Virus record (IMG/VR): IMGVR_UViG_3300010334_000023
Location: 152,499-216,498 of that record
Length of the DNA stretch: 64,000 nucleotides
Reading direction: 5' to 3' (one strand)
Position 1 is the first letter of the stretch; every line of letters starts with the position of its first letter. This document shows, in pieces, positions 60,184 to 64,000 of the stretch. Under the pieces are notes generated by a model. The model was not told the DNA's origin and did not search any database. It saw only the letters and a program-made list of their open reading frames with translations. The translations under genes were made by a program, and so were the position numbers.

Positions 60184-63100
60184 ATGACCAGTCTGCTCTC
60201 AGGTCGAGTCGTAAAGACAGCGAACAACAGCGTCCCTGCTGATCGTTACCAATTCCTCGGCCTTGATGCCGCAGAACCCAATCTAGGCAATCCAACTGGA
60301 ACCAAGGACGCGGTCCTAGCTTCCACGCCAGAAGGTTTCAGATACTGGACAGAAAATGTCACAGGACCAACCGGCGCCAAGGGCAGCACTGGTGCGACTG
60401 GTGTCACTGGACCAACCGGACCCACTGGCGCACAGGGCAGCACAGGACAGAGTGGTGCTACCGGACCAACAGGTCCCACAGGAGCCAGCGGCGGCACTGG
60501 CGCCACAGGTGCTAGCGGTCCCACAGGTCCAACCGGACCTAGCGGATCAACAGGAGCCAGCGGCGTAACAGGTACTACTGGTCCAACTGGTCCTACCGGA
60601 GCCAGCGGTGCTAGCGGTGCTACTGGTGCTAGTGGTGCAACAGGTCCCACTGGTCCAAGCGGAGCTAGCGGAAACACAGGAGCAACTGGTGCCACGGGCG
60701 CCACAGGTCAGACTGGACAGACAGGTGCCACAGGCCAGACTGGTGCGACTGGACAGACGGGTGCTACAGGACAGACAGGTGCCACAGGACAGACTGGCGC
60801 CACAGGTCAAACAGGCGCTACTGGTGCCACGGGACAGACAGGTGCCACGGGACAGACGGGTGCGACTGGACAGACAGGTGCCACAGGCCAGACAGGTGCC
60901 ACAGGATTTACTGGCCCAACAGGCCCCACAGGTCCAAGCGGTGGCCAGGGAGCCAGCGGTGCTACTGGATCAACTGGTGCCACCGGATCAACTGGTGCTA
61001 CTGGTGCTGGTCCCACAGGACCCACAGGTCCCAGCGGTGGCCCTCCTGGTCCCACAGGTCCTACTGGCCCAAGCGGCGGTCCTCCGGGCCCCACAGGTAC
61101 CACTGGTACGACAGGTCCAACAGGCTATACCGGACCTACTGGTCCAACTGGCCTAGGTCCAACTGGTCCAAGCGGCGTGACAGGACCAACTGGTCCCACA
61201 GGCACTGGTACAACAGGTCCAACTGGCTATACTGGTCCCACAGGACAGGGTCCAACAGGCCCAACTGGTGCTACCGGACCAAGCGGTAACGCAGGTTTCA
61301 CTGGACCGACTGGCCCAACTGGGTACACAGGCCCTACTGGTCTCGGAGTCACAGGACCTACTGGTCCCACGGGATACACAGGTCCAACTGGCAATAGCGG
61401 AACCACAGGACCAACCGGCCCTACAGGCTATACGGGAGCCACAGGTCCCACTGGACAGAGTGGTTTCACGGGCCCAACAGGACCAACTGGTTATACTGGT
61501 GCTACTGGTGCCACGGGCGTAACTGGTCCAACTGGAGCAACAGGCGCACAAGGCACTGGCGTGACAGGTGCCACTGGACCAACAGGCTATACTGGTCCTA
61601 CTGGGTTTGGTGCTACTGGATCAACTGGGCCAACAGGCGCAGCTGGTACCGGAGCCACAGGTTCGACTGGTGCCACTGGTCCCACAGGTTACACAGGTGC
61701 AACTGGAGCACCTGGCACGGCTGTGAACACTGGTGCTACTGGTCCCACAGGTAATTCAGGTCCGACCGGAGCACCCGGCACGGCTGCCAACACCGGTGCT
61801 ACAGGTCCCACAGGCATACAAGGTGCCACGGGCGCACCTGGCACTGCTGTTAACACTGGTGCCACGGGTGCCACGGGTGCCACTGGTGCCACGGGAGCTC
61901 CCAGCACAGTCACAGGCCCAACAGGCCGCACTGGTCCAACAGGTCCACTGGGAACTGGTCCTACCGGTGCTACATCAACCGTAACAGGTCCCACGGGTCC
62001 CATTGGTTATACTGGTCCAACCGGTGTCACTGGTGCTACTAGCACGGTACCCGGACCTACAGGTTATACTGGCGCTACTGGTGCCACAGGCGTCAGCGGT
62101 CCAACTGGCAGCACTGGCTCTGGCGGCCCTACCGGATACACTGGTGCACAGGGCGCTACTGGTACAACTGGACCCACGGGCCCAACTGGAGCTACCGGAC
62201 GCACAGGGCCAACTGGTGCCACATCAACGGTGACCGGACCCACAGGAGCTACTGGTCCGCTGGGAACTGGTCCAACTGGTGCCACCAGCACAATCACAGG
62301 TCCCACTGGCTACACTGGTGCCACAGGTCCAACTGGCTACACTGGTGCCACTGGTATCACAGGACAGACAGGTGCCACAGGTCCAACTGGCTACACTGGT
62401 CCAACTGGTTATACAGGCGCCACAGGCGCTACGGGCGCCACAGGTGGTGCAGGCGTCACTGGACCTACTGGACCCACAGGATATACAGGTCACACTGGTG
62501 TCACAGGTCCCACTGGTGGTACTGGCGCTACTGGTGCTCAGGGCAGCACGGGCGTCACGGGTTACACTGGTGCCACAGGTGCCACAGGCGCCACAGGTGG
62601 TATTGGTCAAACTGGTGCCACAGGTGTCACGGGTGCCACAGGTCCCACAGGTCCTACAGGCGCCACAGGTGTTATTGGTCAAACTGGTGCCACGGGTGTC
62701 ACTGGTGCCACAGGTCCCACAGGTCCCACAGGACATACTGGTGTCACTGGTGCTACTGGTGCTACTGGTGCTACCAGCACGGTAACTGGTCCCACGGGTT
62801 CAACTGGCGCAGCAGGCACGTCCGTTAAGATAGTTGGTGCGGTAGCCACGGCCAGCAGCGCAAACTTCACAGCACTCGATCCTAGTCCCACACTGGGCGA
62901 CGGCATCATCGCAGAAGACACCGGCGATCTCTGGGTCTATTCTGCTAGCAGCGCACCTGGCAACATCAACGGCTTCCTAAATGTTGGTCGCATCGTTGGC
63001 CCAACAGGTCCTACTGGCTACACTGGTCCAACAGGTGCCACAGGTGCTACAGGTTCGACCGGTGCTACATCAACTGTGAGCGGTCCCACAGGAGCTACTG

Positions 63101-64000
63101 GTCCAACAGGTCCGATAGGAGCCACCGGTCTCACAGGATACACAGGACCAACTGGTGCCACGGGCGCCACAGGTCAGACTGGACAGACAGGTGCCACTGG
63201 ACCAAGCAGCACTGGTGCTAGCGGATCAACTGGTGCCACTGGTCCAACTGGACAGACAGGTGCCACTGGACCAAGCAGCACTGGTGCTAGCGGACCAACT
63301 GGTAACACTGGACCCACAGGGCCCACAGGTGCTACATCAACAGTGACAGGGCCAACTGGTGCTAACAGCACTGTGACTGGTCCAACCGGTCCAACTGGGC
63401 CTGCTTACACAGGAGCAACTGGTCCAGCTGTAACAGGTCCCACAGGTCCAACTGGACAGACAGGTGCTACTGGAGCTCAGGGTTCGCCGAGCGTGATAAC
63501 CGGACCAACTGGTTACACAGGGCCTACAGGTTCTACTGGACCATACGGACCTAGCGGAAACACAGGACCCACCGGACCAATTAGCGTGACCACTGGACCT
63601 ACCGGTAGCACTGGTCCGACCGGTGCCACAGGCGCAACATCAACTGTGACAGGTCCAACTGGTTACACAGGTTATACTGGACCCACGGGTGTCACAGGTC
63701 CAAGCGGAGGTCCTAGCGGTCCCACAGGAGCCACAGGTCCAACGGGTAGCCCAGGCACTGCTGCTAGCACAGGTGCCACTGGACCTACTGGACCAACAGG
63801 TGCAAGTGGTGCCACAGGCGCCACAGGTGGTATTGGTCAAACTGGTGCCACTGGTGCTACATCAACCGTGACCGGTCCCACAGGTGCCACTGGTTCAGGC
63901 AGCACGGTAAGCGGTCCCACAGGTGCCACTGGTGCCACGGGCGCCACGGGTGTCACTGGACCCAGCGGTGGACCCACAGGTGCCACTGGTCCAACCGGAG
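60184..64000 (+). CDS. Very long Gly-X-Thr collagen-like protein (3'-truncated, >1270 aa; absent from ORF track)
   Basis: [37 protein letters not shown]...then [12 protein letters not shown] triplets. Frame 1 is still in register at the non-repeat island 62821-63000 (SVKIVGAV...TGDLWVY...[10 protein letters not shown]). No stop was seen before the window end. Confidence 0.85.

Follow-up and report, generated by a model that had tools for sequence, protein, structure and literature searches.

At the 3′ end of a 64,000-nt stretch of viral DNA (positions 152,499–216,498 of IMG/VR record IMGVR_UViG_3300010334_000023, hereafter 'the window') lies a giant collagen-like open reading frame (ORF), a single stop-free frame of 1,272 codons at 60184–63999 on the + strand, which we refer to as the fibre gene. 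The frame runs past the 3′ edge of the window, which is also the end of the 216,498-bp IMG/VR viral contig (rated 42% complete), and because the contig end cuts it the ORF is absent from ordinary ORF lists. An AGGTGA-like ribosome-binding site stands 4–5 nt 5′ of the ATG, and local G+C rises to as much as 0.60 across the ORF, against ~0.51 elsewhere, due to its many Gly, Pro, Ala and Thr codons. A previous interpretation made without database searches (the sequence-only reading) had described a collagen ORF of more than 1270 codons, still open at the window edge, and both its size and its truncation by the contig end are confirmed here.

The predicted protein is collagenous over most of its length, with 343 Gly-X-Y triplets in 33 runs making up 81% of the residues and a match to the Pfam Collagen family (PF01391) at E 1e-103 (339.5 bits, against a cut-off of 27.2). 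The X position is occupied by Pro 112 times and by Ala 110 times, and the Y position is Thr in 266 of the 343 triplets (78%). An N-terminal non-collagen domain, presumably the attachment end (60184–60363, aa 1–60), is followed by a first collagen zone of (Gly-X-Thr)n type (60364–62823, aa 61–880), a 58-aa non-collagen island (62824–62997, aa 881–938) and a second collagen zone (62998–63999, aa 939–1272), which carries many STVT-type (G6G) and G4G interruptions and is cut by the contig end; all are on the + strand, as are a GQT/GAT block (60703–60903, aa 174–240) and two GPSGGPP kinks (61030–61089, aa 283–302) inside the first zone. These two blocks, the GYT-rich blocks, the STVT interruptions and the island had all been named from the letters alone, and each was found where it had been placed.

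The collagen period is strongly kept but repeatedly broken. Across the collagen zones of the window, 321 of 372 Gly-to-Gly steps are canonical and 51 are not, the latter comprising GG (n = 11), G1G (n = 18), G4G (n = 5), G5G (n = 4, typically GTAVNTG) and G6G (n = 13, typically GATSTVTG) interruptions. The longest uninterrupted runs, both in the first zone, span 72 triplets (216 residues) and 53 triplets, and the median run is 6 triplets. Many of the interruptions have counterparts at matching positions in the closest orthologue (best local alignment, 62% identity), suggesting that they are conserved features which, judging from the aligned proteins, plausibly act as kinks.

To recover orthologues we used as an anchor on other viral contigs the 150-aa gene that directly precedes the fibre gene, which yielded five complete orthologues of 1,627, 1,744, 1,892, 2,100 and 2,634 aa. 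They share the order N-terminal domain (~60 aa), first collagen zone (560–900 aa), island (58 aa, in the same relative place in four of the five and missing from the most distant), second collagen zone (85–480 aa), non-collagen tip (466–1,749 aa) and, at the very C-terminal end of all five, a Peptidase_S74 intramolecular chaperone. With its closest orthologue (P0003) the window protein stays collinear to about residue 1,267 of 1,744. One orthologue, on contig L013, also has a Gp34_trimer domain, the trimerization domain of T4 Gp34, and in 1,236 phage records the distal subunits of long tail fibres show homology to the C-terminus of the orthologues, which also matches 6f45 in the PDB and 7dc3, the chaperone domain of MYRF. 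The motif at the S74 boundary, Tyr-Ser-Ser-Asp-Ala-Arg-Leu-Lys (Ser-Asp-x-Arg/Lys-Leu-Lys), is invariant in 6 of 6 sequences.

The corresponding C-terminus of the window's own gene was sought on further contigs of the same phage. The start of the window's contig does not carry the missing 3′ end, and no S74 domain was found on that contig. An exact copy of the 150-aa neighbour occurs on 23 contigs, and the eight shown all end inside the fibre gene, after 176, 249, 532, 1,259, 1,272, 1,306, 1,348 and 1,353 codons. The longest (L019) adds 81 codons and reveals a 113-bp exact direct repeat with a period of 252 nt (84 aa), the first copy of which lies at 63878–63990 on the + strand (gene nt 3694–3807, repeated at 3946–4059 in L019), with a unique spacer of 139 nt between the copies. 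In the four longest sampled assemblies with DNA, the window's contig included, the sequence breaks off at a copy of this repeat or just short of one. Contig L034, from the window's own sample in IMG/VR, was considered as the missing end and rejected, as it carries the fibre of a different, smaller phage. Scanning metagenomes with the orthologue C-terminus led to L111, a contig of 136,157 bp whose sample also yielded L020, one of the identical contigs. L111 begins inside the 113-bp repeat and shares a 103-nt exact overlap with the end of L019. From there it continues through the final triplets of the collagen into a non-collagen C-terminus of 530 aa that includes Peptidase_S74 (1.3e-14), and after a stop codon comes the next fibre gene. 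Judged by this overlap, the missing 3′ end of the window's fibre gene is on L111 and belongs to the same phage. The minimal join of L019 and L111, with two repeat copies, encodes 1,905 aa with ~373 triplets and collagen at aa 61–~1375 (~1,257 residues once the island is subtracted); this is a lower bound that bears on length and triplet count only, each extra 252-nt unit adding 84 aa.

Profile matches at both ends and in the middle of the protein point to tail fibres. The N-terminal domain (aa 1–56) matches positions 1–55 of phrog_8745 (1.9e-5), a family of 1,803 positions annotated as 'tail fiber protein' that the whole fibre protein matches at 3.3e-134, and the orthologue C-terminus matches positions 1682–1793 of the same profile. 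Altogether the fibre protein matches 23 PHROG families, mostly annotated as tail-fibre or tail proteins, and the island matches internal parts of two tail-fibre families (phrog_3904 and phrog_15437). The N-terminal domain is conserved in all five orthologues and is homologous to the N-terminus of Prochlorococcus phage P-SSM2 gp023, encoded in the P-SSM2 baseplate/tail-fibre cluster. A word search with the N-terminal domain alone gave one match only, and a Pfam search of this domain, the island and the orthologue tip found nothing.

The surroundings of the gene agree with this assignment. Both neighbours are giant fibre genes, the downstream one being visible in relatives and on L111. The upstream one (P0002, 55494–59669, + strand, 1,391 aa) combines a short collagen stretch (Pfam Collagen, 2.2e-9) with a cyanophage-type fibre C-terminus, matches the tail-fibre family phrog_17885 at 8e-77 and finds tail-fibre genes of Synechococcus and Prochlorococcus myoviruses by tblastn. 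Between it and the fibre gene lies the 150-aa gene (59685–60137, + strand; phrog_1276, of unknown function), syntenic with the fibre gene in 7 of 7 related loci. An AlphaFold2 model of its product (predicted local distance difference test, pLDDT, 78) is a jelly-roll beta-sandwich whose fold weakly resembles those of nucleoplasmin, viral jelly-rolls and C1q/TNF, and the protein may be an accessory or adaptor of the fibre. The contig also encodes a T4-type major capsid protein Gp23 (267 bits) and PhoH, and has PHROG matches. Taken together, the fibre neighbours, the Gp23-encoding contig and the homology to the P-SSM2 cluster place the fibre gene within the tail-fibre/baseplate module of a tailed phage. 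Further upstream, two ORFs of 738 and 442 aa on the − strand (37996–40212 and 40225–41553) likewise have short collagen-like stretches and tail-fibre PHROG matches.

One related record, bounded by direct terminal repeats and rated as complete, measures 518,643 bp, which together with the T4-type capsid gene suggests a huge phage of the T4 superfamily with a genome of about half a megabase. Moraphages were considered as the lineage and ruled out, as their genomes are at most 307 kb (PMC12619734). No psbA match was found on the fibre contig or in the complete relative. The phage sequence occurs in freshwater or lake metagenomes from 14 studies, with 8 runs containing half or more of the sampled sequence words.

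We therefore consider it probable that an uncultivated T4-type huge phage of freshwater lakes has a homotrimeric, collagen-like tail fibre of which the ORF encodes the N-terminal two thirds. The 60-aa N-terminal domain would presumably attach the fibre to the baseplate or to a further fibre protein, to be followed by ~820 aa of (Gly-X-Thr)n, the 58-aa node, at least 437 aa of interrupted (Gly-X-Thr)n and then, beyond the window on L111, a ~415-aa non-collagen tip and the Peptidase_S74 chaperone. By what is known of its family, S74 would trimerize three chains at their C-termini, thereby setting the register for a C-to-N zippering of the triple helix, and would then cleave itself off at the Tyr-Ser-Ser-Asp-Ala-Arg-Leu-Lys motif. 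Collagen folding is known to proceed from a C-terminal nucleus toward the N-terminus (PMC11923368), which fits a trimerizing chaperone in this position. The expected product is a thread, thin and flexible, in which conserved kinks join many short triple-helical segments and which bears a host-binding tip. The earlier description had the collagen ORF right, but lacked both the tail-fibre identity and the C-terminal intramolecular chaperone.

How long such a thread might be can be computed from sequence. At 0.29 nm per residue of triple helix (PMC8968730), the 1,154 collagenous residues of the window part would give a contour length of at most ~335 nm (~300 nm for the canonical runs alone), and the ~1,257 of the minimal full gene ~360 nm; these figures would describe the contour of a flexible thread and not a rigid rod. 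The ~350 nm of fibre first proposed is accordingly a fair upper bound of the contour length, but the helix is not continuous. Much the same applies to the suggestion that the ORF is longer than a vertebrate fibrillar helix. Such a helix has ~338 Gly-X-Y triplets, and the fibre protein equals this count (343 in the window, at least ~373 in full), but those of the window are split by 51 breaks with no run longer than 72.

Several points weigh against the tail-fibre interpretation or parts of it. As S74 also ends tailspikes and other appendages, the protein may be another virion appendage rather than a 'long tail fibre'. None of the RNA runs contains the fibre sequence. Extending the contig, as the sequence-only reading had advised, did yield further DNA on L019 and L111, but the join between them passes through a repeat that may have more than two copies. 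The triple helix itself is a prediction, and a median run of six triplets speaks against it; a three-chain prediction of the island with its collagen flanks (three copies of aa 845–965) scored 0.24 against a mark of 0.32, which counts neither for nor against a trimer. Finally, Ac-(Gly-Pro-Thr)10 on its own is a random-coil peptide and folds when its threonines carry galactose (PMC11923368).

In the strongest alternative, the protein is no host-recognition fibre but decorates the virion, as head or neck fibres or as a 'hairy' coat that serves adhesion to particles or mucilage, or shielding, comparable to the BclA nap and to giant-virus fibrils. The gene stands between two fibre genes, the homologues of which are annotated as tail-fibre or baseplate proteins, the C-terminus of its product is homologous to the distal subunits of long tail fibres, and one orthologue carries the Gp34 trimerization domain, all of which argue against a decoration and make it, in our judgement, unlikely. 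Yet surface hairs of the BclA type have the same Gly-X-Thr composition (PMC7157674), six or more collagen-bearing ORFs occur in the complete relative (G001), beyond the needs of a simple tail-fibre set, and the docking place of the N-terminal domain is not fixed by the data.

How a helix of this composition might be held together bears on the remaining doubts about the collagen-like tail fibre. Only 3 of 1,113 residues in the collagen zones are charged, and KGE or KGD triplets, proposed as a general 'folding code' of long collagens (PMC11923368), number zero. No PF13640-type prolyl hydroxylase was found on the fibre contig or in the complete relative, and Pro is rare at Y. With few charges and no prolyl hydroxylase of the phage's own, stability would have to come from Pro at X, from Thr at Y (through hydration or O-glycosylation) and from the trimeric nodes. 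Collagens of bacteria and viruses typically contain Thr-Gly-Pro and Thr-Gly-Ala triplets (PMC11923368).

Candidate enzymes for glycosylation lie 8 kb upstream of the fibre gene, where two tandem genes (49973–51043 and 51040–52104, + strand; 356 and 354 aa; phrog_13126) encode glycosyltransferases with a GT-A (GT2) domain and a C-terminal tetratricopeptide repeat (TPR) part. The Pfam GT2 match is just above threshold (23.6 bits, against a cut-off of 23.3), the DxD motif is invariant (Asp83, Asp85), and the TPR part resembles, below threshold, the domain with which collagen prolyl 4-hydroxylase binds its peptide substrate (Pfam 24 bits, cut-off 27; PDB 6evl, E 0.006). An AlphaFold2 model (pLDDT 94) has its best whole-length fold matches in ThuS and SunS, both peptide S-glycosyltransferases (E 7e-17), and other classes come some ten orders of magnitude behind (~1e-7). 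In Clostridioides difficile, the 358-aa GT-A and TPR protein SgtA adjoins bclA3 and transfers O-GlcNAc onto the threonines of GPT repeats (PMC7157674). We regard the pair as candidate protein O-glycosyltransferases with a possible link to the fibre. Within a sugar cluster that also encodes a nucleotidyl transferase and DUF7796, the pair is syntenic across the huge-phage lineage. It occurs as well next to fibres that lack a collagen match, such that its co-occurrence with collagen lends no specific support to a collagen acceptor, and its bacterial homologues sit in polysaccharide clusters. It is thus a tentative and rather doubtful proposal that the pair, fed by the adjacent sugar-nucleotide genes, O-glycosylates the Y-position threonines of the Gly-X-Thr fibres as the phage's own collagen-maturation system. 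If true, it would mean a 'sweet' stabilization of a ~360-nm charge-free and hydroxyproline-free helix, as shown for (Gly-Pro-Thr)10 peptides, and a phage equivalent both of the SgtA/BclA3 pair of spores and of the enzymes with which giant viruses modify collagen.

The sugar cluster of the window (46671–52104, + strand) consists of a sugar-1-phosphate nucleotidylyltransferase gene (46671–47381), a RuBisCO-like gene, a gene with a weak DUF7796 match (49234–49971) and the glycosyltransferase pair, with extra phosphomannomutase or methyltransferase genes in the cluster of relatives. The RuBisCO-like gene (47641–48849, + strand) encodes a 402-aa large-subunit-like protein (Pfam RuBisCO_large, 7.7e-37) whose NCBIfam scores, 172 bits for type III and 130 bits for OiaX-like, are both far under the equivalog cut-offs; its position is conserved on two or more contigs of related huge phages, among them L185 and a 313-kb ENA contig. 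A related 213-kb contig with the same sugar cluster (L187) carries genes for a heme oxygenase and a ferredoxin-dependent bilin reductase at 11–1154. Such a gene pair is typical of cyanophages.

The same shortage of stabilizing features invites a second alternative, in which the repeats are an extended, heavily O-glycosylated, mucin-like disordered linker of Thr, Pro and Ala without any triple helix, and the protein is trimeric only at the island and the C-terminal domains. We hold this to be quite improbable, even though (Gly-Pro-Thr)10 is unfolded without sugar (PMC11923368), the Gly period is broken 51 times, salt-bridge triplets are absent and genes for peptide-type glycosyltransferases lie close by. 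Neither strict Gly at every third position, as in 321 of 372 steps, nor interruptions largely conserved between orthologues (62% identity in the best local alignment) would be required of a disordered linker. BclA, with similar repeats, has moreover been reported as a triple helix.

The sequence itself is well supported. Three further assemblies from the Joint Genome Institute (JGI) agree with the window gene at 100% identity across the 3,777–3,817 nt in common, and Logan unitigs from three other lake samples cover 58001–63837 with 0 differences, a single unitig spanning 60702–62607. As unitigs break at repeats of 31 bp or more, they back the sequence and not the order of blocks, which rests on the four identical assemblies and the collinear orthologues. 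In all four runs mapped, summed unitig depth at 62601–62800 reaches 415–2,205, against ~5–40 elsewhere, because this segment is a Gly-X-Thr array with a 9-nt period (by Tandem Repeats Finder) to which the collagen-like genes of many organisms cross-map. It had been asked at the outset whether the long repeat might be inflated by assembly or broken by frameshifts; the four assemblies are identical across 3.8 kb with the frame intact. That the ORF is an inflated or chimeric repeat, assembled from the Gly-X-Thr genes of many organisms, is very improbable in the face of four independent identical assemblies, of the single unitig without differences, of 3.8 kb without a frameshift and of orthologues from other samples that are complete, collinear and similar block for block, although every sampled contig does stop inside the gene, generic Gly-X-Thr DNA does cross-map (to a depth of ~2,200), and the terminal 252-nt unit may have further copies.

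At the DNA level the gene is more repetitive than its protein requires. In comparison with 200 synonymous-codon shuffles of the fibre gene, the longest exact repeat in the window gene is 49 bp (shuffles, 23 ± 2.5, maximum 32) and repeated 21-mers number 113 (shuffles, 5.8 ± 5), to which the 113-bp repeat comes in addition. It had been proposed that diversified codons limit recombinational collapse; the Gly codons are indeed mixed (GGT 184, GGA 83, GGC 69, GGG 7), but the proposal fails against this excess of repeats over the shuffles. Instead, the excess repeats, the 113-bp terminal repeat and the variable zone lengths among orthologues form a pattern that suggests recent duplications and length turnover, and not selection against repeats. 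Short-read assemblies of this huge-phage lineage break systematically in the fibre gene, with the result that its true length and repeat copy number are hidden in current databases.

Elsewhere in the window, a proteostasis block on the − strand (42149–45901) encodes a ClpB-like ATPase (762 aa, phrog_4871), a peptide deformylase and a full DnaJ, and is syntenic in four related huge-phage contigs. A 2,343-aa ORF (30899–37930, − strand) matched no Pfam family and gave two weak PHROG matches of unknown function. Two neighbouring genes with radical-SAM domains (phrog_21308 and phrog_14086) lie at 7748–10245 on the + strand, and a 441-aa HNH endonuclease gene (15880–17205, − strand; phrog_1314, 4.5e-116) adjoins that of a 420-aa ATPase.

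Among the known systems closest to the collagen-like tail fibre is P-SSM2 gp023 (PSSM2_023, 597 aa), which has a homologous N-terminal domain of ~55 aa and Gly-X-Y repeats, is encoded in the tail-fibre module of a T4-type phage, and was counted by Sullivan et al. 2005 (PMC1079782) among candidate tail fibres of the 'simple triplet repeat' kind. It differs in having only ~70 triplets, Pro-rich (GPP/GPS) instead of Gly-X-Thr, a 110-aa globular part before the repeats and another C-terminus without S74, and the window protein has about five times its collagen. The phrog_8745 family resembles the fibre protein in overall length (1,803 positions), N-terminal domain and chaperone-type C-terminus. 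With the S74 fibres and tailspikes, such as endosialidase tailspikes, the T5 L-shaped fibre and the ends of T-even distal long tail fibres (6f45, 7dc3), the fibre protein shares the S74 boundary followed by a coiled-coil tail; in the solved examples, however, the chaperone folds triple beta-helices or beta-structured shafts, whereas here it would nucleate a collagen-type shaft. At the contour length computed above, the fibre would be ~2.5 times the T4 long tail fibre, which measures 145 nm (PMC5537660).

Outside the phages, the BclA and BclA3 exosporium glycoproteins of Bacillus and Clostridioides (PMC7157674) have the same GPT-type Gly-X-Thr repeats and likewise form surface filaments, but on spores and not on a phage, and their N- and C-terminal domains are not in the fibre protein, which has domains of phage-fibre type instead. 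SgtA (358 aa) and the glycosyltransferases of the window (356 and 354 aa) share a two-domain plan, a likeness drawn by description and not by sequence. With vertebrate fibrillar collagen the fibre protein shares its triplet count (~340–375), but that collagen forms one uninterrupted helix of ~1,000 residues with a C-propeptide and hydroxyproline at Y, and the fibrillar C-propeptide domain (COLFI) had no match in the fibre protein or its orthologues; Gly-X-Y in this phage fibre is a convergent use of the motif and not membership in the fibrillar-collagen family. Such a charge-free Gly-X-Thr collagen would nevertheless offer a natural test case for triple-helix folding and stability without hydroxyproline or salt bridges, and very long hydroxylation-independent collagens are sought after as biomaterials.

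That phage tail fibres can contain collagen-like repeats has long been known (Smith et al. 1998, as cited in PMC1079782), and an unprecedented length is not borne out, as metagenomes are rich in collagen-like proteins of 1,000–2,200 aa and the chains of bacteria can be as long as 6,000 aa (PMC11923368). At least 6,039 database proteins of 700–2,226 aa match the fibre protein at E ≤ 0.001, many of them combining Collagen with Peptidase_S74 and lying on large phage-like contigs. In the best 120 of these, triplets in runs of four or more have a median of 199 and a maximum of 333, against 335 in the window fragment and 349 in its closest orthologue; their longest uninterrupted runs reach 264 triplets, against 72 in the window protein, and their median share of Thr at Y is 53%, against 78%. 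The fibre protein is thus no new kind of molecule, but stands at the top end of a known class, the collagen-like phage fibres that end in an intramolecular chaperone.

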